Below are positions 3,524-64,000 of a stretch of 64,000 nt of DNA, piece by piece. The stretch lies in assembly GCA_964019335.1 (NCBI GenBank), contig OZ025698.1, positions 1 to 64,000 of the forward strand. The letters are read 5' to 3'. Position numbers and translations under genes: made by a program. The first letter of the stretch is position 1. Every line of letters begins with the position of its first letter. The notes beneath the pieces were generated by a model. That model made no database searches, was not told the DNA's origin, and saw only the letters and a program-made list of their open reading frames with translations. Source of the DNA: Diplonema japonicum. Taxonomy: Eukaryota > Protista > Euglenozoa: Diplonemea.

Positions 3524-3556
<33 letters not shown>

Positions 3557-3666: not shown

Positions 3667-4155
3667 GGTTGTGCACGGGGGGGGTAGATTCAGCATCTCG
3701 GGGCAAAAAAAGCAGCATCAGGACCCCTCAGATGTCTCAGACCGAGAGAAGTGCCTCTTTGCGGGTGGAATATCGGCCTCGAGATCGTCAAGAGGCCTTT
3801 TTGGGGTGACGGAAGAGTGGTACGAAAAAAGCACTTATTAGGACAGAGGTGGCAGTTACAGGTGTAGCATTTGTTGATTGTGCGTTTTGTGCATCTTTTC
3901 AATCTGCAGACCCTGGTGCCCCTTTGAGTGGCTGGTGGTCGCCAGATTTCTATGCACCACGGGACAGCTTCATTTTCTCCCCACCAGCCCATTTTATGGT
4001 CTCTATGGGTACCAACTCCTTTGCCCATGAAGGTTGGACCCCGTCCGTGGCTGTACTTTTGCGGTTTTTGGGCGCAGTCACACCCGTCAATTTTGCGTTT
4101 TTAGCCTATCTACTTGGATTTGGGACCCACTTGGTGGTGGATAACAAGGTTAAGT
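3667..4155 (-). mobile_element. Internally deleted piggyBac fragment without TIRs (family of 53900-59035)
   Basis: Matches 54117-54395 and 58670-58885; encodes the Cys-rich tail CRLKRCTKRTINKCYTCNCHLCPNKCF. Confidence 0.75.
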
Positions 4156-5760
4156 TATGCAGCGCAGCTGTCTACTTGATTACAGGGGGCGCACCTCGAC
4201 CGAGCAGTAGCTTCTTCTGCGTTCCGCGCTGTGTCCTTAATGCGTGCGGTGTGCAACTCAATCCTAGAAAAACAAAAACTGATGTACTTCTTGCCATTTC
4301 TTCTTTCCATATTATCCCCACCACCAACCCGCAAAAAAAAAAAAAGAAGCAGAGAGGAACAATAATCTTAACCTTCGTCTCTTTTCTTCTTTTCTTTTGA
4401 CGAGGAGGGCTTTTTTTTCCTTCTTCTTTTTTCTTTCTTCTTCTTCTTTTCCCCTACTTCATTTTCATCGGTAAAAAACTTCATAGGTCGAGCTTTTTTT
4501 TTTTTTTTTTCCCTTTTTATATAACTCCAGTCAGATTTTCAAGGGTGGGAGTGAATATAATATTTCACATTATTTCACGCTTCACTTTATTTTCACGGCA
4601 GATTTCAGGCTTGTTTTAGAAAACAAGGGCAGAAATGAAAATTACTTTATGAGTGAAATATAAAGTACTTCACGCTTGCCCTATTTTCACTGCACAGCAA
4701 GGGGTCGGGGGCGCAAACACGGAAAAGGAATCACCTAAGGGGTACCACACAGGCCCCTTGTTTTGGAAACCCCGGTTCGAATCTGGGAATCTCACTTTTT
4801 ACGTCACTCAAGGATCTGGTCGCCTCCCTCAACAGAAGGGGAGAGAGGTGGGCTTGGCAAGCCAGCAGCGGTGACAGCTGCTAGTGGGGCAACCTCAGCA
4901 ACCAGGCAGCAGCCCCACAGGTCCAGACCGAGGTCCTGTCAGCACCCATGGACGCACAGCCCGCACCACACAGGATATGCCTTGACAATCAATATCAACC
5001 ATAAGCACCCCCAGTAAAATTTGTAACTTGTAACTTGTAACCGTAATACCCCACCCTTTCAAATCTGACTGACGTTAAATAAAACAACGGATTTAGTTAA
5101 AATAGATCCGATTTTCACTTGTGGTGGCATGTTTAACTCGTTGATGTTACTTCACTCGCTTCGCTCGTGAAGTCATATACCCACTCGTTAAACCACTGCC
5201 ACCACGCGTGAAAATCATACGATCTTATTTTCACTAAATAAATAGTTCTTTTTTTTTTTTAATTTTTTTTTTACCAGTTTCAAACGAAGAAGGGGACGGT
5301 AGGAAAGGAAGAAAGATGATAGGAAACGAAGTGTTAGCAATGGCCCACCGCGGTGGCATGCCAACCTTATGGTGCTCCTCCTTCTGGGGGTCGAGAAAAG
5401 ATGGCAAAAGAAACACAAAATTAAAAAGGGAGGGAAGCCCACTGACATGAAAATGAAAACAAGTCCACAAATGGAACTTGAACCCGAGAGCAAGGCGTGG
5501 GTTTCTTGTACTCATTTTTTCTTTTAAAGGGGGAAGAGAGGGGAAGAAGAAGAAGAGGCAAATTCAAAAACGAACTACTCAAGGGAGGAAAGAGTGGGGT
5601 GGGAGAGTACAATTTGGGAAGGAGGGAGGAGGAAAGAGGGGAAAAAGAAAAAGGGGGAAATGGAAAGAAATGGAATGACATCAATGTCCATGCGAAAAAA
5701 GCATAGAGTCAGGGGAAAAGAGAAAAACTAAAATCGAAGGACCAAAACATAATAGAAGAT

Positions 5761-5792
<32 letters not shown>

Positions 5793-6079
5793 TTTTTTTA
5801 TAAGAAAAACAATAGTCAAAACAGAGAGGAAGGATGGTGACAGTAGTTTCGGTTCACATGCCCATCGTCGTGATCATAGAAAAACGGGGAGGGGAGGGGG
5901 GATTAGAATATCTTTCATTTTCACGATGATGCGGGAATATGCTGTTATGCCATTGGCAGAAAAGAAAAGAAAAAAAGAAAGAAAAGAAGAATGTATCTGA
6001 TAGTTCGGAAATTTCTTCCCAACCCCCCCTATAACCTGATTGCCCTCCCCTCTCATAATTTGATAATCCGAGCTATAAA

Positions 6080-9000
6080 TTGATTGGTAAGAATGCTCAT
6101 GGCAGGGTTCGAACTCGCGATCCCCGAGTTTTTTCCGTCAACGTAACATCCCTGAAGAACACTCTCCATATCGTCAAGACAATGAAGTCGAACGTCCAAT
6201 TATTACAAGAAACCGCATTGACGCTGGGAGGACAGACAGAAATCGCAGCGTTAATAATGTCAGACAATGATATGAAAGAAAAACGGATGTTATTCGGAGT
6301 GCCACAACCAGGAATGGTGCTAGACGGTGTCGAGAGCAAGATGATAGGGAGGAGGGGTGGACTGGCTACGATTGCAAGACAACCAACAACGTGCGTCACA
6401 ACGCACATTGACGGTCTCGGGATCGGACAAGATGACAGAGTACAACACCTCAAAATCGCGGTAGGCGCAACCCGATGGTTACACATTTTCAACCTGTATT
6501 GTGAAGTGAGGAAGAACTCGTGCGGAAAGCGGCTGAGAGAGGCACTTCTGGACGGGATACTGAACAAGGCAAGGGCTCTCCTTGGGGACGTTCCAATCAT
6601 CGTAGCGGGTGATTTCAACACCACGGTAGCCGAGTCGCCAGTGCTGAAGACCGCCCTCCAGAGCCACTGGATCGATGCAGCAGCAATGCAAGCACGAAAG
6701 GAGGGGCTGGAGGCACCACCGTCGTACATAACCAGTACAGCATCAACGAGACCCGACTATATCCTTCTCAATAGTGCCGCTGCGACCACCCTGAAAGAAT
6801 GCAGAACGGAAGATATTGGTGTTCCGTCACACAGAGCGGTAACAGTCACCCTGGAAATGGAGCCACTAAGACAATTGGTAAGAATATATCAAGTACCACA
6901 GATCCTCACACAAAGAGACACGGCGAATGCGGAAGAGGAAGGGAGCGACATCTTCGGGAAATACAAGCTTGACCGCTTATCGTCATGCACAGCCAGTGAG
7001 ATCGATGCTTGTTACACGAGGCTATCAGAAGCTGTGGAGCAGTTTTATCATGCAAGCAAAGCGCAGATGGGGAGAGGTTGCGTGCGTGAACCGAAGCTAA
7101 GAGAGTTGATAGCGCCATCGACCAGTGGAGGATGCGGTGCAGCGACTTGGAAGGAGCACAAACACCCATTACTTAAAGGAAAGATAAATAGCTTCCTCTC
7201 GCGCCTTGGAGACTACGAAGGGATGCTCCCGTATGATGTACGAAACCAATTAAGGAAAGTGGAAAAGTACGCGGTAGGGATAGGCGTGCATCCAAAGAGA
7301 AGCAACATGGAGCAGTGGACATGCGTCGGGGACATAACCAAAGAACTCATGGTGATGAGGGAGGAGGCCCACAAGACGTACGCCAAAGAACTGCAACGAA
7401 TAAAGTCTAAACGCGCGAAGGCAGAAGAGGCCAGAATTTTATCATCTTTCGGAAGAGAGAGGAAGAGGATCACTGCATTTCTGAAGTCTGGTGACGCTAC
7501 TGACATGATGAAGGCGAAGACAACCGAACAAATTAACAACGGAAAAACCATGACAGCGAGCAACGAGCAGATGTTGGAGGCACTGCGAAGCAAGTGGGAT
7601 AGCATATTCTGCATGTACAGGGGAAAGCAACAACCAAGATATAGCAGTTCAAGGAGAAGTACAAGGACTACATCAACAACTACGAGATGGAATGCTCCGA
7701 GATAACGTGTGCTGATCTACGCGAAGTGCTGAAGAAAACCAAAGGCAAACACTCATGTGGGGTCGATGGGTGGAGATTCGCCGAAATTGAGGCACTACCT
7801 GACACTCTGCTCAAAGGGTTTGCAAACCTCCTCAACGCCATTGAAAGGACGGGTATATGGCCAGAACCGGTGCTCACCGCCTTAGTAACCATGCTGCCGA
7901 AATCGGGAACGGGGGAGCCCCTGGACCACAGACCGATCACAGTCACGAGTGTCGTGTATAGATTGTGGGCATGCGTGAGGCTGAAGGGAGTGCTCCTATG
8001 GCAGGAAGAATGGATAAGGGATAGCCAGCACGGGTTTCGACCTGGACATGGCTGTGATGATGTGCTCGCTGAGCTGTCGACGAGGGCTGAAGCAGCGATA
8101 CTAGGAGGAGCACAATTACATGGAGTCGCTGTTGATTTCCAGAAATGTTTTGATACAGTGCCACAGGAGCTATCCCTGAGGCTGGTTGAGGAACTAGGAC
8201 TACATCCTTGCATAGCGAGACCACTGCGATATGTCTACGCCAACCTGTCACGGAGACTAAAACTTCCTAATGGAGTCGGAGACCCCTTTGAGGTGACGAA
8301 TGGCATCCTACAAGGGTGCCCCCTGTCAGCGGTCCTCATCAACGCCCTCTTGTCGGTGCTCGTAGCAGACATGGAGGAGAGCACCGATGCCATCGTAACC
8401 TCGTACGCCGGCGACCTCACTGCGATGTCCAAGGAAGGGGAGAAGCCGATACAAGAGGCGATGAACGTTGCAAAGATGTTCTGCATGATCACCGGGATGA
8501 TCATAAGCAAACCGAAGACGTTGACATTCTCGACGAAGAAGGGATACGTGTCCAAAGTGAAAGATGGTGAGTTCACTTATGCATCGACGAAGGCTGTGAA
8601 AGCACTCGGAGTTACAATTTATGTAACAAGAGCACGTCAAGCGGGCCACAAAAGGGTCTCAGACGCGATAGAAGCAGCAAGACGGCTAGGAGCGACACAA
8701 CTGCCGTTCGTGAAAAAATCGTTGATAGTGGCACAAAACATCATCCCGGCGGCCCTATATGGTGTTTTGTACGAGCCACCAACGAGGCAACGCCTTGAAG
8801 ACCTCAGGATAGCAGTGACAGATGCACTTTGGGGACCCAAGTACGCGACTCGTTCATCACCGACCCTACTAAACGTGGTACTCCCTGGCCATACACATGA
8901 TCCAGCGGGGAGGTGGCTGGAACCTACACAGCATACCTGGAGCATATCTACTGGAAGTGCAAAGAGTATGAATCTGTACGGAAAGAAGCGATGTACACCA

Positions 9001-13961: not shown

Positions 13962-16900
13962 CTAGAAAGGTAAGTTCTCATTCTCATCTGCATGACTGCG
14001 GGAATTCCTGACATACAACCACAGGAAAGCACTCAGACCCATCAGCACCGTGCTCAAAGCACCGAAGAAAGCGAGATAGAACCACCACCGCGTTCCTTCA
14101 CCCAGATCCTCAGGCTGCGGAGTGCTCTCAAGAGGCACTGCGTCAGGAGTCGCCACATCTGTTGGTGCATCCAGCGGCACGTCTCCTTCCAGTTTTGAGG
14201 GTGAGGGTGTGAGCGGTGCTGGTGTTGGTGGCGAGAGTGTGTCACTACTTAAAGGTGAAGGTGTCGGTGGTGCCGGTGTTGTTGGCTCTTCTGTCACTCC
14301 TGTAGGCAACGCTGTCGGCGCAGTCGTAGGTGGTGAAGATGTTTCTGGACTCAGTGTCGGAGGACTAGGTGTTGGTGGTTTCGGAGGAGATAATGTGGGT
14401 GGAATTGGAGTCAGTGGTGCAGGTGTTGCCGGGGACTGAGTAGGTGGACTCGGTGTAGCTGGACTTGGTGTGGGTGGTGAAGATGTCAGTGGTGACTGTG
14501 TAGGCGGACTTGGGGTCGGTGGTGCTGCAGTAGGTGGACTTGGAGTAGGTGGTGCTTCAGTAGGTGGACTAGGGGTCGGTGGTGCTGCAGTTGGTGGACT
14601 TGGAGTTGGTGGTGCTGCAGTAGGTGGTGATGGTGTCGGTGGACTTGGAGTAGGTGGTGCTGCAGTAGGTGGACTTGGAGTAGGTGGTGATGGTGTCGGT
14701 GGACTTGGGGTCGGTGGTGCTGCAGTAGGTGGACTTGGAGTCGGTGGTGCTGCAGTAGGTGGTGATGGTGTCGGTGGATTTGGAGTAGGTTGTGATGGTG
14801 TCGGTGGACTTGGGGTCGGTGGTGCTTCAGTAGGTGGACTTGGAGTAGGTGGTGCTTCAGTAGGTGGACTTGGAGTCGGTGGTGCTGCAGTAGGTGGTGA
14901 TGGTGTCAGTGGACTTGGGGTCGGTGGTGCTTCAGTAGGTGGACTTGGAGTAGGTGGTGTTGCAGTAGGTGGACTTGGAGTCGGTGGTGCTGCAGTAGGT
15001 GGTGATGGTGTCGGTGGACTTGGGGTCGGTGGTGCTTCAGTAGGTGGACTTGGAGTAGGTGGTGCTTCAGTAGGTGGACTGGGAGTCCGTGGTGCTGCAG
15101 TAGGTGGACTTGGAGTAGGTGGTGCTGCAGTAGGTGGTGATGGTGTCGGTGGACTTGGGGTCGGTGGTGCTTCAGTAGGTGGACTTGGAGTCGGTGGTGC
15201 TGCAGTAGGTGGTGATGGTGTCGGTGGACTTGGAGTAGGTGGTGCTTCAGTAGGTGTACTTGGAGTCGGTGGTGCTTCAGTAGGTGGACTTGGAGTAGGT
15301 GGTGATGGTGTCGGTGGACTTGGGGTCGGTGGTGCTTCAGTAGGTGGACTTGGAGTCGGTGGTGCTGCAGTAGGTGGACTTGGAGTAGGTGGTGCTGCAG
15401 TAGGTGGTGATGGTGTCGGTGGACTTGGAGTCGGTGGTGCTGCAGTAGGTGGTGATGGTGTCGGTGGACTTGGAGTAGGTGGTGCTGCAGTAGGTGGTGA
15501 TGGTGTCGGTGGACTTGGAGTAGGTGGTGCTGCAGTAGGTGGTGATGGTGTCGGTGGACTTGGGGTCGGTGGTGCTTCAGTAGGTGGACTGGGAGTCCGT
15601 GGTGCTGCAGTAGGTGGACTTGGAGTAGGTGGTGTGGCAGTAGGTGGTGATGGTGTCGGTGGACTTGGGGTCGGTGGTGCTTCAGTAGGTGGACTTGGAG
15701 TCGGTGGTGCTGCAGTAGGTGGTGATGGTGTCGGTGGACTTGGAGTAGGTGGTGCTGCAGTAGGTGGACTTGGAGTAGGTGGTGATGGTGTCGGTGGACT
15801 TGGGGTCGGTGGTGCTTCAGTAGGTGGACTTGGAGTAGGTGGTGCTTCAGTAGGTGGACTTGGGGTCGGTGGTGCTGCAGTAGGTGGTGATGGTGTCGGT
15901 GGACTTTTAGTCGGTGGTGCTGCAGTAGGTGGACTTGGAGTAGGTGGTGCTGCAGTAGGTGGTGATGGTGTCGGTGGACTTGGAGTCGGTGGTGCTGCAG
16001 TAGGTGGACTTGGGGTCGGTGGTGCTGCAGTAGGTGGTGATGGTGTCGGTGGACTTGGAGTCGGTGGTGCTTCAGTAGGTGGACTTGGGGTCGGTGGTGC
16101 TGCAGTAGGTGGAATTGGAGTAGGTGGTGATGGTGTCGGTGGACTTGGAGTAGGTGGTGCTTCAGTAGGTGTACTTGGAGTCGGTGGTGCTTCAGTAGGT
16201 GGACTTGGAGTAGGTGGTGATGGTGTCGGTGGACTTGGGGTCGGTGGTGCTTCAGTAGGTGGACTTGGAGTCGGTGGTGCTGCAGTAGGTGGACTTGGAG
16301 TAGGTGGTGCTGCAGTAGGTGGTGATGGTGTCGGTGGACTTGGAGTCGGTGGTGCTGCAGTAGGTGGTGATGGTGTCGGTGGACTTGGAGTAGGTGGTGC
16401 TGCAGTAGGTGGTGATGGTGTCGGTGGACTTGGAGTAGGTGGTGATGGTGTCGGTGGACTTGGAGTCGGTGGTGCTGCAGTAGGTGGACTTCGAGTAGGT
16501 GGTGCTGCAGTAGGTGGTGATGGTGTCGGTGGACTTGGAGTAGGTGGTGCTTCAGTAGGTGGACTTGGGGTCGGTGGTGCTGCAGTAGGTGGTGATGGTG
16601 TCGGTGGACTTTTAGTCGGTGGTGCTGCAGTAGGTGGACTTGGAGTAGGTGGTGCTGCAGTAGGTGGTGATGGTGTCGGTGGACTTGGAGTCGGTGGTGC
16701 TGCAGTAGGTGGTGATGGTGTCGGTGGACTTGGAGTCGGTGGTGCTTCAGTAGGTGGACTTGGGGTCGGTGGTGCTGCAGTAGGTGGAATTGGAGTAGGT
16801 GGTGATGGTGTCGGTGGACTTGGGGTCGGTGGTGCTGCAGTAGGTGGACTTGGAGTAGGTGGTGCTGCAGTAGGTGGTGATGGTGTCGGTGGACTTGGAG

Positions 16901-19412
16901 TCGGTGGTGCTGCAGTAGGTGGTGATGGTGTCGGTGGACTTGGAGTCGGTGGTGCTGCAGTAGGTGGTGATGGTGTCGGTGGACTTGGAGTCGGTGGTGC
17001 TTCAGTAGGTGGACTTGGGGTCGGTGGTGCTGCAGTAGGTGGAATTGGAGTAGGTGGTGATGGTGTCGGTGGACTTGGGGTCGGTGGTGCTTCAGTAGGT
17101 GGACTTGGAGTCGGTGGTGCTGCAGTAGGTGGACTTGGAGTAGGTGGTGCTGCAGTAGGTGGTGATGGTGTCGGTGGACTTGGAGTAGGTGGTGCTTCAG
17201 TAGGTGGACTTGGGGTCGGTGGTGCTGCAGTAGGTGGTGATGGTGTCGGTGGACTTGGAGTCGGTGGTGCTGCAGTAGGTGGACTTGGAGTAGGTGCTGC
17301 AGTAGGTGGTGATGGTGTCGGTGGACTTGGGGTCGGTGGTGCTTCAGTAGGTGGACTTGGAGTAGGTGGTGATGGTGTCGGTGGACTTGGAGTCGGTGGT
17401 GCTGCAGTAGGTGGACTTGGAGTAGGTGGTGCTGCAGTAGGTGGACTTGGGGTCGGTGGTGCTGCAGTAGGTGGACTTGGAGTCGGTGGTGCTGCAGTAG
17501 GTGGTGATGGTGTCGGTGGACTTAGAGTAGGTGGTGCTTCAGTAGGTGGACTTGGGGTCGGTGGTGCTTCAGTAGGTGGACTTGGGGTCGGTGGTGCTGC
17601 AGTAGGTGGAATTGGAGTAGGTGGTGATGGTGTCGGTGGACTTGGGGTCGGTGGTGCTTCAGTAGGTGGACTTGGAGTCGGTGGTGCTGCAGTAGGTGGA
17701 CTTGGAGTAGGTGGTGCTGCAGTAGGTGGACTTGGGGTCGGTGGTGCTGCAGTAGGTGGACTTGGAGTCGGTGGTGCTGCAGTAGGTGGTGATGGTGTCG
17801 GTGGACTTAGAGTAGGTGGTGCTTCAGTAGGTGGACTTGGGGTCGGTGGTGCTTCAGTAGGTGGACTTGGGGTCGGTGGTGCTGCAGTAGGTGGACTTGG
17901 AGTAGGTGGTGATGGTGTCGGTGGACTTGGGGTCGGTGGTGCTTCAGTAGGTGGACTTGGAGTAGGTGGTGCTGCAGTAGGTGGTGATGGTGTCGGTGGA
18001 CTTGGAGTCGGTGGTGCTGCAGTAGGTGGATTTGGAGTAGGTGGTGCTGCAGTAGGTGGTGATGGTGTCGGTGGACTTGGGGTCGGTGGTGCTGCAGTAG
18101 GTGGACTTGGAGTAGGTGGTGCTTCAGTAGGTGGACTTGGGGTCGGTGGTGCTGCAGTAGGTGGACTTGGAGTCGGTGGTGCTGCAGTAGGTGGTGATGG
18201 TGTCGGTGGACTTGGGGTCGGTGGTGCTTCAGTAGGTGGACTTGGAGTCGGTGGTGCTGCAGTAGGTGGTGATGGTGTCGGTGGACTTGGAGTAGGTGGT
18301 GCTTCAGTAGGTGGACTTGGGGTCGGTGGTGCTGCAGTAGGTGGTGATGGTGTCGGTGGACTTGGGGTCGGTGGTGCTTCAGTAGGTGGACTTGGAGTCG
18401 GTGGTGCTGCAGTAGGTGGTGATGGTGTCGGTGGACTTGGAGTCGGTGGTGCTGCAGTAGGTGGATTTGGAGTAGGTGGTGCTGCAGTAGGTGGTGATGG
18501 TGTCGGTGGACTTGGGGTCGGTGGTGCTGCAGTAGGTGGACTTGGAGTAGGTGGTGATGGTGTCGGTGGACTTGGGGTCGGTGGTGCTTCAGTAGGTGGA
18601 CTTGGAGTAGGTGGTGCTGCAGTAGGTGGTGATGGTGTCGGTGGACTTGGAGTAGGTGGACTTGGAGTAGGTGGTGCTGCAGTAGGTGGACTTGGAGTAG
18701 GTGGTGCTGCAGTAGGTGGTGCTGCAGTAGGTGGACTTGGAGTAGGTGGTGATGGAGTTGGTGGACTTGGAGTCGGTGGTGCTGCAGTAGGTGGACTTGG
18801 AGTTGGTGGTGATGGAGTTGGTGGACTTGGGGTCGGTGGTGCTGCAGTAGGTGCTGCAGTAGGTGGACTTGGAGTAGGTGGTGATGGAGTAGGTGGACTT
18901 GGAGTCGGTGGTGATGGAGTAGGTGGACTTGGTGTAGGTGGTGCTGCAGTAGGTGGACTTGGAGTCAGTGGACTTTGTGTCGGTGCTAGTGTTGGTGGTG
19001 ATAGTGTTGGTGGACTCGGCGATGGAGGTGCGGGTGTAGGTAAGAAGTCTTTGTTGGCTGCGCAGAATTGTGTAGCAGTAAGCAGTGTGTTAGCAGAAAG
19101 ATGCGCTGATCTGGTTCTTGTACCGCAACATTTTGCCCTATTACCGTACGTTGTTCCATCGACGTGTTCAAATTTACCCTCCTGCGAATGATCAAGGCCT
19201 AATACATATGTGGGCTCTGATGCGCAGTAACAGCACTTACATGTAATTGAAATAAAACCTCCGAATCTATGCCAATAAATCTTACCGACACCAATGCGAG
19301 CCCAAGCCGGATCCCAACCATAACTATGGTAAGAGGAAACTTCGCCGCATCCCGGCTGAGGAGTAGCAGATGTTGCAGAGTGTATCAAAGCACATATGAA
19401 AAGAAAACGCAT
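13962..19412 (-). CDS. Type I membrane mucin/extensin-like surface protein: signal peptide, Cys-rich head, PPTPS/PPTAA/PPTEA stalk, TM helix
   Basis: Uninterrupted ORF; ATG at 19412 gives MRFLFICALIHSATSA; head of about 110 aa with several Cys; about 1550 aa of 5-aa repeats; WWFYLAFFGALSTVLMGLSAFLWLYV then a short tail. Confidence 0.88.
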   Translation of the reverse strand: MRFLFICALIHSATSATPQPGCGEVSSYHSYGWDPAWARIGVGKIYWHRFGGFISITCKCCYCASEPTYVLGLDHSQEGKFEHVDGTTYGNRAKCCGTRTRSAHLSANTLLTATQFCAANKDFLPTPAPPSPSPPTLSPPTLAPTQSPLTPSPPTAAPPTPSPPTPSPPTPSPPTPSPPTPSPPTAAPTAAPPTPSPPTPSPPTPSPPTAAPPTPSPPTPSPPTPSPPTAAPPTAAPPTPSPPTAAPPTPSPPTPSPPTPSPPTAAPPTPSPPTEAPPTPSPPTPSPPTPSPPTAAPPTPSPPTPSPPTAAPPTPNPPTAAPPTPSPPTPSPPTAAPPTPSPPTEAPPTPSPPTPSPPTAAPPTPSPPTEAPPTPSPPTPSPPTAAPPTPSPPTEAPPTPSPPTPSPPTAAPPTPSPPTAAPPTPSPPTEAPPTPSPPTAAPPTPSPPTPSPPTAAPPTPNPPTAAPPTPSPPTPSPPTAAPPTPSPPTEAPPTPSPPTPSPPTPSPPTAAPPTPSPPTEAPPTPSPPTEAPPTLSPPTPSPPTAAPPTPSPPTAAPPTPSPPTAAPPTPSPPTAAPPTPSPPTEAPPTPSPPTPSPPTPIPPTAAPPTPSPPTEAPPTPSPPTEAPPTLSPPTPSPPTAAPPTPSPPTAAPPTPSPPTAAPPTPSPPTAAPPTPSPPTPSPPTPSPPTEAPPTPSPPTPSPPTAAPTPSPPTAAPPTPSPPTPSPPTAAPPTPSPPTEAPPTPSPPTPSPPTAAPPTPSPPTAAPPTPSPPTEAPPTPSPPTPSPPTPIPPTAAPPTPSPPTEAPPTPSPPTPSPPTAAPPTPSPPTPSPPTAAPPTPSPPTPSPPTAAPPTPSPPTAAPPTPSPPTPSPPTPIPPTAAPPTPSPPTEAPPTPSPPTPSPPTAAPPTPSPPTPSPPTAAPPTPSPPTAAPPTKSPPTPSPPTAAPPTPSPPTEAPPTPSPPTPSPPTAAPPTRSPPTAAPPTPSPPTPSPPTPSPPTPSPPTAAPPTPSPPTPSPPTAAPPTPSPPTPSPPTAAPPTPSPPTAAPPTPSPPTEAPPTPSPPTPSPPTPSPPTEAPPTPSTPTEAPPTPSPPTPSPPTPIPPTAAPPTPSPPTEAPPTPSPPTPSPPTAAPPTPSPPTAAPPTPSPPTPSPPTAAPPTPSPPTAAPPTKSPPTPSPPTAAPPTPSPPTEAPPTPSPPTEAPPTPSPPTPSPPTPSPPTAAPPTPSPPTPSPPTAAPPTPSPPTEAPPTPSPPTPSPPTATPPTPSPPTAAPRTPSPPTEAPPTPSPPTPSPPTAAPPTPSPPTPSPPTAAPPTPSPPTPSPPTAAPPTPSPPTPSPPTAAPPTPSPPTAAPPTPSPPTEAPPTPSPPTPSPPTPSPPTEAPPTPSTPTEAPPTPSPPTPSPPTAAPPTPSPPTEAPPTPSPPTPSPPTAAPPTPSPPTAAPRTPSPPTEAPPTPSPPTEAPPTPSPPTPSPPTAAPPTPSPPTATPPTPSPPTEAPPTPSPLTPSPPTAAPPTPSPPTEAPPTPSPPTEAPPTPSPPTPSQPTPNPPTPSPPTAAPPTPSPPTAAPPTPSPPTPSPPTPSPPTAAPPTPSPPTPSPPTAAPPTPSPPTAAPPTPSPPTEAPPTPSPPTAAPPTPSPPTQSPLTSSPPTPSPATPSPPTQSPATPAPLTPIPPTLSPPKPPTPSPPTLSPETSSPPTTAPTALPTGVTEEPTTPAPPTPSPLSSDTLSPPTPAPLTPSPSKLEGDVPLDAPTDVATPDAVPLESTPQPEDLGEGTRWWFYLAFFGALSTVLMGLSAFLWLYVRNSRSHADENENLPF
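14470..18970. repeat. 15-bp coding minisatellite with higher-order repeats
   Basis: GGTGGACTTGGAGTA / GGTGGTGCTGCAGTA / GGTGGTGATGGTGTC units. Confidence 0.95.
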
Positions 19413-19542
19413 ATTAACCTGGTAGAGAGGTGGAAAAGTGGCAAGAAAAACTCGATAAAATTTCAATGTGCATGGGGGTGCTCACGTGTTCAAGAAGAAA
19501 TTCACACTAATCGGTCACCGTTCTGCGGTTGCTGTCTGGTGC

Positions 19543-22500
19543 GTCAAGGGCGGCCTGCGGAAAGCGTACAACGCCTTCCTTATCGAACGCGTGGATCGAC
19601 GCTTCGCCATGGAGAAAAGCAACTTGCTGGCCTTCTTCACGCAAGTCCTCCACCGATACGACGCCAGAGCCCCGGTAGATTCTTGGTTGCCGGAAAAAAC
19701 GTACATAGGCCCCAAGAAACCCCGTGCGCTTCCCTCGGACGACTCCTCAGCTGACTCCTCAGTCGTCTCCTCAGTCGCCTTCTCGGGGGGCCCCTCAGAC
19801 GAGCCCTCGGACAATTCCTCGGACAGCTCTTCAGGTCTTGTCGAACCGTCACAACCCCGAGCAGCCTCCGTGGTCTCACCATCTGGTGTCACGGACCAGG
19901 TTTTTTCGCCCCCCATCAACCTGCACACCAACAGCGGGGAAGGTCGCCTGGGCCTGGAATGCGGCTGGGCCGTCATAAACTGGTTGGCGGACTATGCTGG
20001 TGTGGACCGCATCCCCTTCTCTACAATGCAGGAGATCCAGGAGATGTACCACGGCTTCTCACGACTCATCTCCCCTTCCAGCACTGATGAAGCGCCCGAT
20101 CCTCTTGGCAACTTTTCCCGCTCGACCTTGTCACGTGCTTGCCTCATGGTCGTTGGTGCAAACTTGGAGGTCTTCCGTGCAGGCATGAAAGAAAGCCCCT
20201 GCTTGATCGTTGGTCCCTTGAAACGAAGTCTCAGCGGCCACTGGTTCATCGCTCTCAGGAAGAAGGGAAGGTACATGGTCAAAGACACCGACGTACGGCT
20301 AAGGCTCCAGAGCTTCAAACACATCTGCGCGACATACTCCGAACACAACATCCTCTGCATCCCAGACGATGTGTGGGCCAGGACAACCCCAGGCAGGAAA
20401 CACAACACACGTGTTCTAGACCCTGAGGCTGAGTTTCGCCAGTTTGAGCCGGTCATCACCCCGGCGGCACCCCAGGTAAGCGACTCGAGCGCGCGAAAGA
20501 CTGAGACCGCTCTCAACACCCCGGAAGATCGCACCCTCCTAACTCATGTCACCCTAGCTGCAGCTATAGCTACATATGCCGCACGCACCCGACGGCTCGA
20601 CACAGGAGTCGCCGCATCAGGTGTGGATGCGCACACCGCTCACTTCGGGCGGCCCGTCGCCACCGCCATCGTAGCCCTAGCTGCCGCCGTGGCCGCGCGA
20701 GCCGTGCACACCGGATGCTCTGTCACCACCACGTCTACGGCAAGCTAGACTAACGTGGTCGGAACTGTCCCGCTCTTCCTGAAGGTCTCGAGTCTGCACA
20801 AGTCTACACCACAGACAGCAGTCGCAACCTGTCAGACGGACCGTGTCACAGCACCTGTACTGTTCTCGATATCATCGACGCTCCAGACGGATCCTCCCAG
20901 CAGTAGACTGCCCCCGATGGACGCCGGACTGGGGTCGCCCTCGGCCGCGGCGGTCAGACTTACGAAGTCTGTCGAAATTCCGACGCCCCGCGCGACCCTG
21001 TCGAGGCGGCCGGTTACTGAGCCTCGGTTGACACCATGCCTTCCACCGCCAACGGACGTGTCATCCACCCAGCTCGCGGCCTGCACTCAGTCCACCCGTC
21101 GGGACACCGGACACGGGAGTGACACACCGATGCCGTCGTCTACCATGGGACACGCGACACTCCAACCAGTGGTCGGCTCCCAGATTGTGACAACGTCGGC
21201 TGTGGAGTCATCGCTCGCCCGAGCCGTGACAACGCCCGTTCTGGCAGACGCCCCCCTCGGCGCCCGCCAGGTACAGCTCACTCCTTGCATCCAGTCCGTC
21301 CATGAGAACATCGGACTCGGGATGGATACGCCGATGGCTCCCGCCATGGGACACGCGACGCTTCAACCGGTGGTCAACGCCCAGAGAGACACGACGCTGA
21401 CCCTGGAGCCGCCCGTGGCCCGAGCCGAGGCAGACGCTCCCCTAGACCCTCACCAGGCGGATGGTGGTTTAGAAATGATCGACCTCACGCAGGACTCCCC
21501 GGACAGACCCTCGCGCAAGAAGAAGCACGACGGCACTGCTTACGAGCACGAAAGCCGTCGTGGTAAGAGTTCCTCCACAGGCGATGGGGATCTTCTCATC
21601 CTGCGCGAGCAGTCACAGGGTTTTGATCAGGAAGCCCTCAACCGAAGAGCCCTCCAGAGACGGATGGATCGATACCTCAGTCTCTTGGTCTACTTCCGGC
21701 GACACCCGGAGCTCTTGGACGAACACCAGCGTCAGCTCCTGTCGGTCGGTCCCCTCCCGATGCACCTGGACACCTCTCCACATCAACTGCTGCTCGAGGC
21801 CCGTGACACGGATAGAACTGCCGACCAACAGGCAACCGTCGCCAACCAGGAACAGCTTCTTCTGATTGCGCACAAGGCGTTGCCTACCACCGAACGTCTT
21901 CGGTTGTCTCACGAATGGCACTCGGGGCTGAACACCGCGGTACAGCAACAGTGGTGGTCGGAGTTCTTCGCCCAAGGCGGCTGGAAACACCCACTCTTCG
22001 GTTCCGAGGCCCCAAGAGGTGACGAGACTAGGACTCCAGGGAGGACCCCTCTCCTGCTCACCTACAACGGGCAGAGGAACAAACGCCCGGAACCCGAAGA
22101 CGGCCCCGCCCTTCCCGCGGCCAAACGGGATCTCGCCGCGACGAGGCCGAACACCAGAGTCACTGGACTTGTCGCCCTTAAGAGGCTCACCAGGGAAGCA
22201 GACGTCGACGGCCCTGAGGACCTGGATGAGCTTCGACACCTGGGCTTCCTTTCCCAGGGCGAGGCCGTCTTTGACCTCAGCTGCATGTCCAGGGCTTGCA
22301 CACACTTCCTGGGTGAGACCCCCATGGTCACGGTCCCCCTCGACACACGCGCCGCGATCCCGTGTCTGCTGGTCTGTTATGACTCGACGTGGCTCTACGC
22401 TTCCCGCCAGGAACAGGGCTTTCGGTTGCAGACCCAAGGGTTCAAGGACAAGTCGTATCCGACTGTGGCAGCCCTACTCGCTGACTTCGTGGGGGCAGGG

Positions 22501-22554
22501 ACCCTCTACTACAGCGAGTCACAGTGGTCGACTGTGCTGAACTCCTACAACTAG
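19543..22554 (+). pseudogene. J-A ORF: Josephin-like protease domain, low-complexity linker, inactive Josephin-like domain; one in-frame TAG at 20746-20748
   Basis: ECGWAVINWL, DPLGNFSRSTLSRAC and GHWFIALRKKGRYMVKDT resemble ataxin-3/JOSD motifs; ORFs 19468-20748 and 20755-22554 share a frame. Confidence 0.7.
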
Positions 22555-23038
22555 GAACTACTGGAGACGACCCTACGCAATGTAGGATTGCCGGCCCGGC
22601 GTGCTACGAGGGCGATAGGCTATGCAGGGTCTCACAGACCTCGCACCCTATGATTTTAGTTTCCACCTTTTCCTTTTCCACTTCTTGTCTTTTAACTTCC
22701 CTTCTGCTTCCCAACATGGTTTCCGTCCCGGGTATGACGTTAAACTGCGTCCGCCGACGCATTTGGGTCAACATTCTCTGATGACCAAGCCGTCTTTTTC
22801 CGTTTCTTCTCCCCTTCTCTTTGTTATGTTATTTTCATTATTCTTTCTGGCGATAGACTGATACGGGCCATGGAAGCAACCTCTGCTTAATTCCTGGTAC
22901 GTGGGAGGCTCCTCTTGAGGATGTCAGTCACCTTTTCCCTTTTTTACTCGACTCTCTGTTTTCGTATGCAGTATTTATTCTTTCCCACCCCTTTTTACCT
23001 ATTTCTTCGCTTCTTCATCCTAACTTAAAACCATTTCA
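19543..23038 (+). mobile_element. J-A retroposed element, 5'-truncated
   Basis: TSD GGTGC (19538-19542, 23039-23043); 3' end ...CTTAAAACCATTTCA shared with other copies; frame is open from the 5' junction. Confidence 0.85.
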
Positions 23039-23117
23039 GGTGCCTGCGGTGGCTGTTTGTCTCGATGAGATGGATGGCATCTGGGTGAGAAACATTGCTT
23101 GGAGTCGTGCTAGGTAG

Positions 23118-24169
23118 AAATGATTTTAAGTTAGAGTAGAGAAGCGAAAAAATAGGTAAAAAGGGGTGGAAAAGAATAAATACTGCATACGAAAAAAGAG
23201 AGTCGAATAAAAAAGGGAAAAGGTGACTGACATCCTCAAGAGGAGCCTCCCACGTACCAGGAATTAAGCAGTGGTTGCTTCCATGGCCCGTATCAGTCTA
23301 TCGCCGGAAAGAATAATGAAAATAACGGAACGAAGTGAAGTAGGAAAAGAGAAAAGACGGCCTGGTCGCCAGGAAGTGCTGGTTCAGACGCGTCGGCGGA
23401 CGCAGTTTAACGTCATACCCGGGACCGAAAACATGTGGGAAAAGGAAAAAGCAGAAAGGGTAGTAAAAAGTTTAAAATTGGAAAGAAAATGGAAAGGGTG
23501 GAAACTAAATAATAGGGTGCGAGGTCTGTGAAACCTTGCATAGCCTATCGCCCTCGTAGCACGCCGGGCCGGCACTCCTACATTGTGTAGGGTTGTTTCC
23601 GATTGTTCCTAGTTGTAGGAATGCAGGACAGTCGACCACTGCGACTCGTTGTAATAGAGGGTCCCGGCCCCTACAAAGTCAGCGAGCAGGGCTGCCACGG
23701 TCGAGTAGGACTTGTCCCCGAACCCTTGGGTTTGCAGCAGAAAGCCCTGTTCCTGGCGGGATGCGTAGTGCCACGTCGAGCCGTGACAGACCAGCAGGCA
23801 CGGGATCGCAACCCGTGTGTTGAGGGGGACTGCAACCAGGGGGGCCTCACCCAAGAAGTGAGTGCACGCCCTGGACATGCAATTGGGGTCAAAAATGGCC
23901 TCGCCCCTGGAAAGAAAGCCCAGATGCCGAAGCTCATCCAGGTCCTCAGGGCCGTCGACGCCTGCATCCTTGGTGAGCCTCCAAAGGGCGACGAGCCCAG
24001 TGATCCTGGTGTTCGGCCGCGTCGCGGCGACATCTCGCTTGGCCGTGGGGAGTGCAGGACCGTCCTCGGGCTCCGGGCGTTTGTTCCTCTGTGCATTGTA
24101 GGTGATCAGGAGAGGGGCCTTCCCCGAAGGTCTAGCTTTATCGCCTCCTGGGGTCTCGGAGCCAAAGAG
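23118..24169 (-). mobile_element. J-A element, second diverged copy, 5'-truncated
   Basis: TSD CGTGCTAGGTA(G) at 23106-23117 and 24170-24181; homologous to about 21994-23037. Confidence 0.9.
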
Positions 24170-24839
24170 CGTGCTAGGTAGGGGGCGGTTTGGCTCGAGG
24201 TGAAGAGTGGTCTCCTGTCGTAGCCGTGTGCCGTCGGGCCCCCAAGATGTCGAAGGGTATGCACCCTTGATTTGGCGTTGGGAAGGCTGACCTTCCACAA
24301 CGTGCTAAGCATTTCTGGATGTGTACCAAGATGTATCGCATCCTTGCGGCCCTCTCAAATGGATATTGAACCCGAGAGCAAGGCGTGAGTCGCCTCTATT
24401 CCCTTTTTTTTTTAAGGGGAAGGACTTTTTTAAAGGGAAGAAGAGAAGAGTTCAAAAACGAACTATTCTAGTACAATTAAGAAAGAGGGGAAAAGAAAAA
24501 GGGGAAAGGGGAAAGAAATGGAATGACATCAATTCCCATGCGAAAAGCACAGAGTCAGGTGGGAAAATTAAATCCAAAAACGAAGGGGAAAGAAGAAAAA
24601 ACAAATACCAAAACAAACTAAAAGATCTTTTTTTTTTTAAAGAACAACAATAGTCAAAACAGAGAGGAAGGATGGTGACTGTAGTTTCGGTTCACATGCC
24701 CATCGTCGTGATCATAGAAAAACGGGGAGGGGAGGGGGGATTAGAATATTTTTCATTTTCACGTTACATGATGGGGGAATGCTGTTATGCCATTGGCAGT
24801 ATTAGAAAAGAAGAAACAAAAAGCTATTTATTGCTAACA

Positions 24840-37786: not shown

Positions 37787-38239
37787 ATCCATGCAAAAAG
37801 TCACTCCCAATGGAGGTCACACACTGCCCAGGGTCCGTCACTCGGAAGTGACGAAGGCCAGAAGGGAAATATTCTGTGTGAAGGCGAAGGCACTCATCAC
37901 CCGATGCCTCCACCTGAAGAAGAAGGTCAGGGTCCTCCTCCAAACGCCGTCCCATCGCCTCCCTTGTATCTTCTGAAGACAGCTCCTGTGAAGAGACACA
38001 TCGTGTTGTGCACATTGCAGCAGAGAAGGAGTTCGCACCCCTCCCACATCCCCAGCTGCTGTACCTCATTCTCACTGAAAGTGTCATCCAGTTCTTCACC
38101 TTCGAAGTGCAAGAGGAAGGTTCCCACCTCCACCGCAGAAGCCTTTGCCGCCTTCCTGTACAGGTCCTTCACCGTGTCAAGGCCTCCCCGCTCCGTGCGT
38201 CTTCCCGTCTTCCATCTTCACGAACACCGTCAGGCTCAT
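37787..38239 (-). pseudogene. Ubl-LRR family 5' fragment
   Basis: Near-identical to 39178-39637 with small deletions; truncated at GGGTTTGC-like repeats. Confidence 0.85.
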
Positions 38240-38590
38240 TTTCTTATTTATTTCGTTGTTGGTTGCAAACAAAAGCTGTGTTGATTGGACCAATATTCTG
38301 AAATCAGTTTTCAGACTAAAATATAATATAATGGAATGGAAAGATGTAGTAAATTGCGTTCAACGTGTCGCTGATTCTTTCTCCTGTAAATTCGACTCCC
38401 GTTTCGACCTGCCAAGCCGTTCCCACGAGGTGGGGTGGAAGTGTTTTGAGACGCTTTACCGGGTTTGGGGCTCTTTACTGGCACTGTTCTTCACCTTGGT
38501 TGATCATCCTTCCTGTGCAGCCCTTCCATCCTTTTGTGTGCTTCCGTTCACCTGCCCAGGTAGTAAGTTTTTGTAATCAAACTCAGTTCA

Positions 38591-39637
38591 TCAACACACA
38601 ACACAACACTTGAAGCATGTCCTTGGCCGCTTGCGTTCCCCCAAAGGTACATTGTCGCAGTAGTAGTGTTCCCCAACAACTGTGACCCTCTCCCTCAGAT
38701 CCCCGAAGTCAACGGTGGTCAGAGAACGGCAGTCACAAAGAAAACCGCTTCCCAATCTTTTCAAGTTCCGCATCGCACTCAGGTCAACAGAAGTGAGGGA
38801 GGTGCAATTACTCAGAAAATAGTCTCCCACCGACACCACACCAGGAAGGCCAAAATCCACAGAAGTGAGGGAAGTGCAATTGCTGAGAAACCTGTTACCG
38901 ATCACTGTGACATTCCGAAGGGGGCCCACATCAAGGGTCTGCAGAGACTTGCAAGATGACATGAAAGATTGATCCACCTCCGTCACGTTCTGAAGGGGTC
39001 CCAGATCCACCAGTGTCAGGGATTCACAGTAACTGAGGAAACCAAACTCAAGTTTCTTGATATTGTGAAAGGGAGCGAGGTCAATGGCCTGCAACGATTT
39101 GCATCTAGAAAGAAAATAAAGTCCTACTACTCGAACACACTGAAGGGAGGTGAGGTCAAGGGTGACAAGTGATGTGCATCCATGCAAAAAGTCACTCCCA
39201 ATGGAGGTCACACACTGCCCAGGGTCCGTCACTCGGAGGTGACGAAGGCCAGAAGGGAAATATTCTGTGTGAAGGCGAAGGCACTTCACACCCGATGCCT
39301 CCACCTGAAGAAGAAGGTCAGGGTCCTCCTCCAAACGCCGTCCCATCGCCTTCCTTGTATCTTCTGAAGACAGCTCCTGTGAAGAGACACACATCGTGTT
39401 GTGCACATTGCAGCAGAGAAGGAGTTCGCACCCCTCCCACATCCCCAGCTGCTGTACCTCATTCTCACTGAAAGTGTCATCCAGTTCTTCACCTTCGAAG
39501 TGCAAGAGGAAGGTTCCCACCTCCACCCCAGAAGTCTTTGCCGCCTTCCTGTACAGGTCCTTCACCGTGTCAAGGCCTCCCAGATCCACATCGTGCGCCT
39601 TCCCGTCTTCCATCTTCACGAACACCGTCAGGCTCAT
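38591..39637 (-). CDS. Ubl domain + BspA-like LRR protein with C-terminal CaaX (CVVC)
   Basis: MSLTVFVKMEDGKAHDVDL..TVKDLY..LHFEGEELDD (Ubl); 22-23-aa FLxxCxSLxxVDL repeats; basic patch then KCCVVC-stop. Confidence 0.85.
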   Translation of the reverse strand: MSLTVFVKMEDGKAHDVDLGGLDTVKDLYRKAAKTSGVEVGTFLLHFEGEELDDTFSENEVQQLGMWEGCELLLCCNVHNTMCVSSQELSSEDTRKAMGRRLEEDPDLLLQVEASGVKCLRLHTEYFPSGLRHLRVTDPGQCVTSIGSDFLHGCTSLVTLDLTSLQCVRVVGLYFLSRCKSLQAIDLAPFHNIKKLEFGFLSYCESLTLVDLGPLQNVTEVDQSFMSSCKSLQTLDVGPLRNVTVIGNRFLSNCTSLTSVDFGLPGVVSVGDYFLSNCTSLTSVDLSAMRNLKRLGSGFLCDCRSLTTVDFGDLRERVTVVGEHYYCDNVPLGERKRPRTCFKCCVVC

Positions 39638-45082: not shown

Positions 45083-45197
45083 TTGGTAAACGTTCTTCTT
45101 CTTTCAATCGATTGTTATATGTACTTATAAAATATAAAATATAGCGCGCATTCGACGACACTGATCAAGCGACTGGCACCTTCCGAAGAAGGGCCTC
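45083..45197 (-). mobile_element. J-B element, 115-bp 3'-terminal copy
   Basis: TSD CGTTTCCTTATCCA at 45069-45082 and 45198-45211; same 3' end as 54737. Confidence 0.92.
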
Positions 45198-46652: not shown

Positions 46653-47072
46653 AAGGCGAAGGGGGACGTCGAGAGACGGCAGCAGTTCACGCGGCACGGA
46701 GATATGAGAGCCTTGAAGGATCACTACTTCGTGGCCACTGACTGGCTGTTCTTCACCACGCTGCAGTGGCATAATGTGGGACAGCGCCACCCCCCAAGAA
46801 CCACGAAGACCTTACGCAAGTAAGAGAGCTGGCCCGGCGAGCTACGAGGGCAAAAAACCTCATTTCTCCTTGGAGATGAGAACATATATTATAGTGCGAC
46901 ATGATCAGACTGGAACGGCCGCCCCGGGGCATCCTCTGCTCAACCCGGCGGACGTGGGAGGCCCTTCTTCGGAAGGTGCCAGTCGCTTGATCAGTGTCGT
47001 CGAATGCGCGCTATATTTTATATTTTATAAGTACATATAACAATCGATTGAAAGAAGAAGAACGTTTACCAA
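46653..47072 (+). mobile_element. J-B element, 420-bp 3' copy
   Basis: Reverse complement of 54737-55156; no TSD seen. Confidence 0.9.
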
Positions 47073-59504: not shown

Positions 59505-59645
59505 TGAAATGGTTTTAAGTTAGGATGAAGAAGCGAAGAAATAGATAAAAAGGGGTGGGAAAGAATAAATACTGCATACGAAAACAGAGAGTCGAGTAAA
59601 AAAGGGAAAAGGTGACTGACATCCTCAAGAGGAGCCTCCCACGTA
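59505..59645 (-). mobile_element. J-A element, about 140-bp 3'-terminal copy
   Basis: Reverse complement of about 22898-23038 with the same CATTTCA end; no TSD seen. Confidence 0.88.
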
Positions 59646-62182: not shown

Positions 62183-64000
62183 AAAAAAAAAAAAAAAAAA
62201 AACTCGATAAAATTTCAGTGTGCATGGGGGTGCTCACTGTTCAGGTAGAAATTCACACTAATCGGTCACCGTTCTGCGGTTGCTGTCTGGTGCCTGCGGT
62301 GGCTGTTTGTCGCGATGAGATGGACGGCATCTGGGCGAGAAACATTGCTTGGAGTCGTAGGTAGGGGGGGGTTTGGCTCGAGGAGAAGAGTGGTCTCCTG
62401 TCGTAGCCGTGTGCCGTCGGGCCCCCAAGATGTCGAAGGGTATGCACCCTTGATTTGGCGTTGGCGGGGAAGGCTGACCTTCCACAGCGTGCTGAGCATT
62501 TCTGGATGCGACCCAAGATGTATCGCATCCTTGCGGCCTTCTCCGTGAGCAGGTCTTGATCGTCGAGGGGACCTATGAGTGACCGGCGGGTGGTCTGCTC
62601 ATAGTCTATGGCGAGTTCCATTGTAGTGACGGAAGTTTTCTTCTTACCATCGTACCATCGTAGGCCTCTTAGCCACTTGAGGACGTTCTTCAGATGAAAG
62701 GTCAGGACCGCGCCTGACGCCCCGTTCGCCTTCAGCAACGCTTCCGTCGGAACATCATGTTGCCTCCCTGTCGTTACCTCATCCCAAGGGTTGGAGGTGA
62801 GCACTCTCTTGCTTTTTTCCGCTGCTCTGGCGTCACGGACCGTCACTACTTTCAGGAGGTATTGTTGCACCATCCTGGCACGTTCTTTCCCTGCTTTGTC
62901 GGCTCCTCTTGGGACTATCCCGTGAAGGGCTGTGGCAGCTGGGAGGCCTTCTCGCTTCACCTCTGCGTATTGCTCGCTTTCCAACACACTCCTTGCCGGC
63001 TCGCACTCCCACAGTGCATGCTCCGTCATGCTGGTCGTTGTCTGGGACCGGTGGTCGCAAACGTCACACGCTAATGCTGGGTTTTCCACACCAGGGCCAT
63101 CCAATTTTCTCCCCCACACCCTCGGGTGAGTCGTGAACACTGCACCACTAATGATGCGCCGCAACCTAAAGGACACCAACGGTCTCCGGGCCTGGAGCTT
63201 TTTCCACCAATAGTTCGTGGACGGGCGCGCCCCTGCCTCCATCCCCACGAAGGTTGATCTCTTCTCGATCAGCCTCTTCGCAACTGCCGGTCTGATGGCT
63301 TGCCTCACTTTGTGAGCCACCGCTGTATCTCCGTGCAGGTCGGCCACAAAGGACCATCCCTTCCCCAGAAAGGGGAGCCATCTGTTCCGCAGGACTCCAA
63401 TCGGACCCATCACCTCATCGTCATCACGGTCCTGGTATAGACCAATGATCTCACCAACACGCTGCCGCAAACGCGGAGAGGCCAGGCTCTCCCGGACCAA
63501 GCTGTTTATCGTTCCGTAGATGACCTTCGACAGCGGATGTGCCGTATGCCCTGGCAGCAGAACGTTCAGTACAGACACGGGGTTTCCCTTCCCGAACTGG
63601 GGGCCCCACAGGGAGACCACTGCCGCTGTACACTTCTTCAGCTGGTCGTCCGAGGGTGCCGCATACGTTGCTCCGTACAGACACGACGGTAGCACAGTGC
63701 TCGTCAACATCGTCGACTTGTTCTCAAACCCTAGTGGCAAAGCTCCGAGACGGGTCAGGCGTCCCTCCGCTGCGTCCAGCTTGTCCAGCCTGTGATTCCC
63801 ATCCATGCTCAGGTTCACGCCAAGTGATTTGATCTCCCTAGTTACCTTGAACGAGGAACCGGTGCATACTAAACTAGGGCCGATCTCGTTTTTCGTCGAG
63901 AATCCCTGCGACTTCTTTCCGTTGAGGCGCATCTCTGTCCGGTCCCCGAACTCGATCACCTTGTTGGTCGCCCTTGTCAGGACCTCCGCTAAACGCGCCA
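62183..64000 (-). mobile_element. LINE-D, C-terminal part and 3' end (continues beyond window)
   Basis: Post-RT KSLGV, CDVCD...HALWEC and ELAIDYE motifs homologous to LINE-A/C; ORF open over 568 aa. Confidence 0.9.

Follow-up and report, generated by a model that had tools for sequence, protein, structure and literature searches.

The first 64,000 nucleotides of the forward strand of contig OZ025698.1 of Diplonema japonicum (assembly GCA_964019335.1; this whole stretch is called the window below) contain copies of two repeat families, J-A and J-B. From the results below, it seems that both are families of an autonomous Naiad/Chlamys-type Penelope-like element (PLE), i.e. a retrotransposon, that carries a Josephin-like module at the C-terminal end of its protein (estimated probability roughly 0.82). 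In a preliminary description of the window, the 3' open reading frame (ORF) of these families had been read as a double Josephin-like protease and not a reverse transcriptase (RT). The latter does not hold for full-length copies, in which an RT and a GIY-YIG endonuclease (EN) lie upstream in the same frame. The former holds in so far as two related domains are present, of which only one (J1) looks active, while the other (J2) is dead.

All six copies proposed earlier were recovered by self-BLAST of the window, with the same boundaries. These copies, their target-site duplications (TSDs), the shared empty site and the J-A 3' untranslated region (UTR) are as follows:

19543..23038, + strand: J-A copy 1, 5'-truncated, 99.5% identical to the full-length element L037:2955-9845 over element positions ~3392-6891
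22555..23038, + strand: 3' UTR of J-A copy 1, ending in ..AAAACCATTTCA, without poly(A) and without hammerhead ribozyme
23118..24169, - strand: J-A copy 2, 5'-truncated, of a diverged subfamily, 83-85% identical to copy 1, with a 12 bp TSD
59505..59645, - strand: J-A copy 3, a 3'-terminal fragment matching the final 142 bp of the element (6750-6891) at 99-100% identity
54737..58080, - strand: J-B copy truncated within J1, with an 18 bp TSD
46653..47072, + strand: J-B 3' fragment, without TSD
45083..45197, - strand: J-B 3' fragment of 115 bp, with a 14 bp TSD
19538-19542 and 23039-23043: TSD ggtgc, 5 bp, flanking J-A copy 1
23106-23117 and 24170-24181: TSD cgtgctaggtag, 12 bp, flanking J-A copy 2
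45069-45082 and 45198-45211: TSD cgtttccttatcca, 14 bp, flanking the J-B fragment 45083-45197
54719-54736 and 58081-58098: TSD aaaattccccgtcaaccc, 18 bp, flanking the J-B copy 54737-58080
62195..62543, + strand: paralogous empty site for both J-A insertions (19543 and 23118), with each target present once

Each family has its own fixed 3' end, as had been described (that of J-B reads ..GAACGTTTACCAA), and there is no A-run at either, in line with the poly(A) reported missing. TSDs, of 5, 12, 14 and 18 bp, were confirmed for four of the six copies, while none was found when looked for at 46653-47072 and 59505-59645. Together, the fixed 3' end, the 5' truncation and the TSDs support the earlier view that the pattern is one of target-primed reverse transcription. 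The three J-B copies are 98-99% identical where they overlap. J-A copy 2, on the other hand, belongs to a diverged subfamily, given its 83-85% identity to copy 1, and its J2 shares 95% protein identity with that of the L030 subfamily (itself ~80% identical to J-A). Copies 1 (+) and 2 (-) lie tail to tail with 79 bp in between. The empty site is 91-95% identical to 19443-19542, 23036-23117 and 24175-24356, and since it runs uninterrupted across all three flanks, with each target once, the two copies are separate insertions into one host repeat. Joints of 19542 to 23039-23083 in contigs from public sequencing runs were considered as proof of polymorphism and rejected, being paralogous empty sites. 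The window copies themselves are dead; in copy 1 there is a private in-frame stop (20746..20748, + strand), where other copies have C at 20746.

The key to the nature of the element lies in the copies elsewhere in the genome. Copy 1 consists of the end of the RT region, J1, a linker, a helical region, J2 and the 3' UTR, and upstream of its truncation point other genome copies, which match it over its whole length, carry on with shared sequence. A DNA search of the genome gave at least 65 matching pieces for J-A and at least 78 for J-B (lower bounds on pieces, not copy numbers), most of them 98-100% identical, their 3' end being shared while the 5' ends scatter; diverged subfamilies (75-85% identity) are present as well. 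The full-length J-A element measures 6,891 bp (L037:2955-9845). Its 5' end, ~3.4 kb above the start of the window copy, is common to three copies (L037:2955, L039:2901 and L042:2932), and an 11 bp TSD is found exactly at the element ends in L037. While L037 itself is frameshifted, L004, L005 and L006 keep a single frame of at least 1,506 amino acids (aa) uninterrupted, spanning the RT motifs, J1 and J2 up to the stop; on contig C52, a profile search of the genome came upon two open frames surrounding J1, one of 2,175 aa and one of 1,995 aa. Every protein analysed here is the unaltered translation of one natural copy. J-B likewise has an RT upstream (in L043, a copy internally deleted after RYI), so that the RT which the preliminary description had proposed to look for is present above both families. 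The depth of contigs from public runs climbs toward the J-A 3' end, as 5' truncation predicts, and a D. japonicum Trinity ORF from EukProt (P0003) is 98% identical to the C-terminal region of J-A. Judging from the 98-100% identity of copies, the open 2,175-aa frame and the matching transcript, the element looks recently active.

In full-length J-A, no stop interrupts the first ~200 codons (L037:2955-3560), and their product looks folded (..EEVIRTICDAYGAGVRKALFVRDVVQNGNVLKVHLEIA..). Copies of both families are strongly clustered on few contigs (C85, C81, C91, C52, C60 and C106) and are often nested in each other, which suggests transposon-rich islands. At C85:119007-119610, a 42 bp stretch of the J-B 3' region (query 3148-3189) has been multiplied in tandem, to at least 13 units. 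Contig C114 bears, upstream of its J-B copy, an unrelated RT-like ORF (L043:199-1353; ..LVYIDNFVLY..), which is probably part of another retroelement.

Pfam searches of the ORFs in the window gave no RT or EN match, because the window copies are 5'-truncated; the first codons from 19545 onwards are, in fact, the tail of the RT-containing ORF. The earlier statement that the ORF has no RT or endonuclease motif is therefore correct for the truncated window copies but not for full-length ones. This lack of RT and EN matches is what favoured a protein-coding, RT-less, non-autonomous retroposon mobilised in trans, one of the two options put forward earlier. That option is refuted by the EN and RT found in the J1/J2 frame of at least three copies reaching 6.9 kb; the 5' ends of shorter copies are, moreover, scattered as truncation would give, and J-B too has its upstream RT, which leaves it next to no probability. 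The 5'-truncated copies with TSDs also look like retropseudogenes, i.e. processed pseudogenes derived from one static host gene, which had been named earlier as a case that would undo the transposon reading. However, EN and RT are encoded by the source itself, the pieces (at least 65 and 78) fall into two families with subfamilies at 75-85% identity, poly(A) is lacking, and a strict target motif marks the 3' junction, all of which rules such pseudogenes out for practical purposes.

In the full-length J-A frame, the order of parts is GIY-YIG, KR-rich block, CxC, GxKF, DK, RT, J1, linker, helical region and J2. Pfam places GIY-YIG (PF01541) at aa 248-288 of L037:2957-6889 (E 4.5e-4) and, in the same ORF, RVT_1 at aa 940-1022 (E 8.6e-5). 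The endonuclease shows the motif set GIIY..YAGQT..RRR..GHW..ENQYINRL, and is followed by a KR-rich block (RRRRNTKRKPK), the CxC region (NCPCSK..H.H..GH) and RGMKFRL; then come IDKS, KLHK and the RT motifs YDFRDMYTNL, GIPMGGNASP and RYIDDF. Only two homologues of this EN-RT part, both distant and ~935 aa each, were found among 5.8 billion proteins (P0001 and P0002). Both have an N-terminal GIY-YIG, CxC and an RT-like region (RVT_1 is flagged by Pfam in P0001, not in P0002) and could be aligned with J-A over all diagnostic motifs, the J-A CxC and GxKF/Y motifs being matched by PVCKC/RCICE and GANYRI/GYKYRL. Between YDFRDMYTNL and GIPMGGNASP, i.e. RT motifs A and B, lie ~80 aa at the position of the IFD (an insert within the fingers domain), with a similar length in P0001 and P0002 (the only references). 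The EN hairpin differs, reading LAVDKHGEPVYAGQT in J-A versus ITCSKCNIHYVGET in P0001/P0002 (LAVDKHGEP in J-A versus ITCSKCNIH in P0001). The J-A endonuclease thus is without CCHH cysteines, for which reason J-A is assigned to the Chlamys type, and its DK motif reads IDKS. The nearest Atlas clusters consist of ~1,000 aa proteins that combine GIY-YIG, RVT_1, HTH_animal and DUF8422 in various ways, with few recorded taxa, mostly animal, which is to be taken as a lead only. When the EN-RT alignment served as a profile against PDB sequences, only chance matches came up, with no TERT or RT among them, and Rfam, run on a full-length copy at the gathering threshold and at E<=1, gave no hammerhead or other element RNA.

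The other option put forward earlier, an autonomous clade of non-LTR (long terminal repeat) elements with a C-terminal protease module, is right about the autonomy and the C-terminal module, but not about the non-LTR class, as the domain order is that of a permuted PLE. A new clade of this class, i.e. of long interspersed nuclear elements (LINEs), would be in keeping with the fixed 3' end, the variable TSDs and the 5' truncation typical of target-primed reverse transcription. Josephin domains are also known in Dualen/RandI LINEs (PMC9977147; bioRxiv 10.64898/2026.06.17.732966), and a J1 homologue is borne by a Flectonema LINE (P0012). On the other hand, no apurinic-like (APE; Exo_endo_phos) or restriction-like (RLE) endonuclease domain was matched in the full-length ORF, the nuclease being a GIY-YIG located N-terminally of the RT. 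The CxC, GxKF, DK and KLHK motifs and the sole sequence homologues are of Naiad/Chlamys type, and there is neither poly(A) nor a simple-repeat tail. A new LINE clade is thus very unlikely.

The part downstream of the RT can be divided into the following features, all given for J-A copy 1:

19894..20388, + strand: J1, a Josephin-like cysteine peptidase domain (by fold match, conserved motifs and dN/dS)
19960-19962 (Cys), 20239-20241 (His) and 20284-20286 (Asp), + strand: putative J1 triad (by conserved motifs)
20389..21470, + strand: linker, low-complexity, disordered and weakly constrained (dN/dS 0.77-0.84 over much of its length)
21475..22161, + strand: conserved IDLTQD/KKKH patch and helical region before J2 (dN/dS 0.16-0.29)
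22162..22524, + strand: J2, a catalytically dead duplicate of J1 (by hhalign, BLASTP, secondary-structure order and dN/dS ~0.2)
22552-22554, + strand: stop of the ORF after J2

An AlphaFold (AF2) model of J1, made with a 12-sequence alignment, reached a confidence (pLDDT) of 91.4, and its top five matches in VIA-align are all Josephins (Z 10.4-12.6), with ataxin-3 at Z 12.6 (140 of 165 residues aligned at a root-mean-square deviation of 2.8 A) and JOSD2 at Z 11.4. In Foldseek, too, the ataxin-3 Josephin domain has the highest TM-score (0.62-0.66). Thirteen remote J1 homologues were found among 1.8 billion representative proteins. The motifs ECGWA, GHW and DTD, which supply Cys, His and Asp, are kept in most of the 12 aligned homologues, with a fitting spacing, and the triad looks intact at the sequence level. 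From His to Asp there are 15 residues, equal to the distance from H119 to N134 in ataxin-3.

A papain-like fold with a triad that looks intact, within a very long fusion protein with disordered linkers, could also belong to a polyprotein-processing or C39-like peptidase that cuts the long ORF product, e.g. freeing EN-RT from the C-terminal module, and C39 double-glycine peptidases and viral leader proteases do match J1 at Z 7.5-9. Josephins, however, score 2-3 Z units above the other families, with 140 of the 165 residues covered, and homologous domains sit at either end of LINE proteins and of proteins of Mutator-like elements (MULEs), where there is no polyprotein in need of cleavage. That J1 is such a processing or C39-like peptidase and not a deubiquitinase is rather unlikely.

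That J2 is a duplicate of J1 follows from a comparison of J2 with the J1 profile by hhalign (probability 70.5%, E 3.9e-5, 120 columns, from the position of the catalytic Cys to the end) and from BLASTP (E 0.002). At the triad positions Cys is replaced by Thr/Ser, His by Thr and Asp by Gln. The J2 model repeats the helix/strand order of J1, and its best Foldseek matches are Josephins, without being significant. With the L030 subfamily as the reference, dN/dS is 0.17-0.41 for J1 and 0.16-0.29 from the patch through the helical region and J2, which is low compared to the linker and indicates that J1, the helical region and J2 are maintained by purifying selection. The transcriptome ORF P0003 covers the IDLTQD/KKKH patch and the helical region, while the linker contains an internal duplication of ~165 bp (21070-21235 versus 21274-21437, 71% identity).

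J-A inserts beside a strict motif. At all 30 distinct J-A 3' junctions, ..CATTTCA is followed by G-Y-T-A-C-C-T; every one has G at +1 and C at +5, and 29 have C at +6. This GYTACCT motif opens the TSDs of L037, L014, L020 and J-A copy 2 of the window, and therefore belongs to the target. J-B junctions are flanked by R-G-G-N-T-T. An insertion bias towards (CA)n or (C)n was not seen in either family, since neither GYTACCT nor RGGNTT is a microsatellite. The J-A 3' UTR holds a target of its own (CAG|TCACCT), and insertion of new copies there, with an 18 bp TSD, has led to the partial tandem 3' pieces in L025, L017 and L041. Partial tandem and inverted arrangements occur (e.g. the tail-to-tail pair in the window), whereas a regular pseudo-long terminal repeat (pLTR) is absent from the three full-length copies. 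Read on the opposite strand, the J-A target is AGGTARC, which is similar to the 5' splice-site consensus AG|GTRAG.

A possible mechanism of integration would start with the GIY-YIG nuclease nicking the bottom strand at the target motif, upon which the freed 3' OH would prime reverse transcription starting at the 3' end of the RNA; base pairing between the primer and the 3' end of that RNA may add to the target bias or account for it. Early termination of reverse transcription would give 5'-truncated copies such as those in the window, and a second, staggered nick would give TSDs of variable length. J1 could be a deubiquitinase-type or ubiquitin-like-specific cysteine peptidase that serves the element, e.g. 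by shielding its protein or ribonucleoprotein against ubiquitin-dependent disposal, with J2 as a possible non-catalytic binding or scaffold partner.

Several points weigh against the preferred interpretation as a whole. The placement as a PLE is drawn from the domain order and the diagnostic motifs, and both Pfam scores, for GIY-YIG and for RVT_1, are under the curated cut-offs, even though the motifs are visible in the translation. There is no in-frame Met before MAKDQV, ~200 codons into the element. As for J1, no sequence search ties it to Josephin (no Pfam match at E<=1, and chance matches only in a profile search of PDB sequences), and C39 peptidases are its next-best fold match (Z ~9). 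Confidence in the J2 model is low (pLDDT 57), and the target motif could reflect primer-template pairing, not nuclease specificity.

Homologues of J1 are found in other transposon proteins as well. In a 1,748 aa LINE of the diplonemid Flectonema neradi (P0012) the domain is N-terminal (order J domain, APE, RT), in MULE and SWIM transposases it is C-terminal (P0010 and P0015), and in P0006 and P0014 it directly follows the same kind of RT as in J-A. Going by these architectures, the J1-type peptidase domain has been recruited by three transposon classes, and the presence of J1 homologues in both LINE and MULE proteins makes recruitment of a ubiquitin-system peptidase by transposons look recurrent. 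Whether the Josephin-like domain is a portable cassette, swapped among transposon classes in diplonemids and related protists, with the J1/J2 pair as a ubiquitin-editing unit needed to escape a ubiquitin-based transposon defence of the host, is a more speculative matter, possible but for now doubtful. On that reading, J-A and J-B would also be the first PLEs with an N-terminal EN known in Discoba, and the clade would have to be very ancient or to have spread by horizontal transfer.

If correct, the preferred reading as a Naiad/Chlamys-type PLE would extend the permuted Naiad/Chlamys elements to Euglenozoa, from where no report was found in the literature searched: the D. japonicum genome paper is silent on transposons (PMC13598402), and that of D. 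papillatum lists LINE, SLACS, R2, MULE, TATE and Helitron, and no PLEs (PMC10161547). The signs of recent activity make the element a candidate model for PLE integration, which is mechanistically poorly known, and the strict 7-nt target motif offers a concrete handle on the specificity of the GIY-YIG nuclease. In addition, a well-folded Josephin-type domain under selection would be present in a PLE, together with a pseudo-enzyme duplicate.

Other features of the window surround these elements. Adjoining the J-A insertion site is an ORF of 1,834 aa that consists almost wholly of PTPSPPT(A/E)APPT repeats, with a hydrophobic leader and a Cys-rich head at its N-terminus and a stretch resembling a membrane anchor at its C-terminus; by its sequence it looks like a gene for a mucin-like surface protein. 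Further dispersed and tandem repeat families (73-97% identity) lie around the J elements, and the genes for U4 and U6 small nuclear RNA (snRNA) are 1.2 kb apart:

13962-19466, - strand: 1,834-aa ORF
52299-52437, - strand: U4 snRNA gene, 71.3 bits
53631-53734, - strand: U6 snRNA gene, 88.7 bits
981-1552, 5405-6018 and 24356-24822: other repeats
37787-42953: other repeats
3667-3940, 43685-43957 and 54116-54394: other repeats

Among known systems, the Naiad/Chlamys elements are the closest. They are defined by an N-terminal GIY-YIG, a KR block, CxC, GxKF/Y, an insert at the IFD position and the absence of a canonical hammerhead, and are further marked by 5' truncation and by tandem or inverted insertions; in Chlamys, as opposed to Naiad, the EN has no CCHH cysteines and DK has no fixed third residue, and a bias of insertion towards (CA)n or (C)n has been reported for many Chlamys elements, though not all (Craig et al. 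2021, PMC8557442). J-A resembles Chlamys in its N-terminal GIY-YIG without CCHH, KR-rich block, CxC, DK rather than DKG and lack of a canonical hammerhead, as well as in its size (6.9 kb, within the range of 3.3-8.2 kb), in being often truncated at the 5' end and in its partial insertions, tandem or inverted; the stretch between its RT motifs A and B may be a counterpart of the long Chlamys insert. It differs in its target, the 7 nt motif GYTACCT versus (CA)n or (C)n repeats, and J-A and J-B differ in their host, a diplonemid (Discoba), whereas the listed Chlamys hosts are green algae, spike mosses and Physarum. With the invertebrate Naiads, J-A shares the permuted EN-RT order, CxC, GxKF/Y and the RT motifs, but its EN is without CCHH cysteines, its length is about double and it has the Josephin module, while Naiads prefer (TA)n; in P0001 and P0002 the EN hairpin does contain Cys, as Naiads should.

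Josephin-type domains in retrotransposons have precedents. Dualen LINEs carry a Josephin-related cysteine protease (JCP; PMC9977147), and the ORF2 protein of Haematococcus has an N-terminal Josephin (bioRxiv 10.64898/2026.06.17.732966). J-A thus resembles the Dualen/RandI elements of green algae in the recruitment of a Josephin-type domain by a retrotransposon, but these are LINEs of the APE/RLE class, and the domain is N-terminal in Haematococcus ORF2p and P0012, whereas in J-A it lies C-terminally of the RT and is duplicated. Compared to the Josephin deubiquitinases (ataxin-3 and JOSD1/2; PF02099, MEROPS C86), J1 has the same fold, and its putative Cys, His and Asp fit theirs in order and spacing, but it differs in the absence of a Pfam/HMMER match, in Asp for Asn and in three extra residues between the GEG motif and the Cys.

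The nearest precedent is Chlamys-1_cBra from Chara braunii. Its ORF measures ~1,800 aa and is extended at the C-terminal end by a part that is weakly homologous to Josephin and precedes a C/H-rich motif (PMC8557442). Because of this element, a layout of RT followed by a Josephin-like domain has already been described in Chlamys (PMC8557442), and the full-length copies essentially match a described clade of such architecture, the very outcome that the preliminary description had named as counting against its claim. By description, the two differ in their second part, which is the C/H-rich motif in Chara and the dead Josephin duplicate in J-A. New in J-A and J-B are the host, which belongs to Discoba, the dead second Josephin, a short sequence as target instead of microsatellites and the signs of recent activity.

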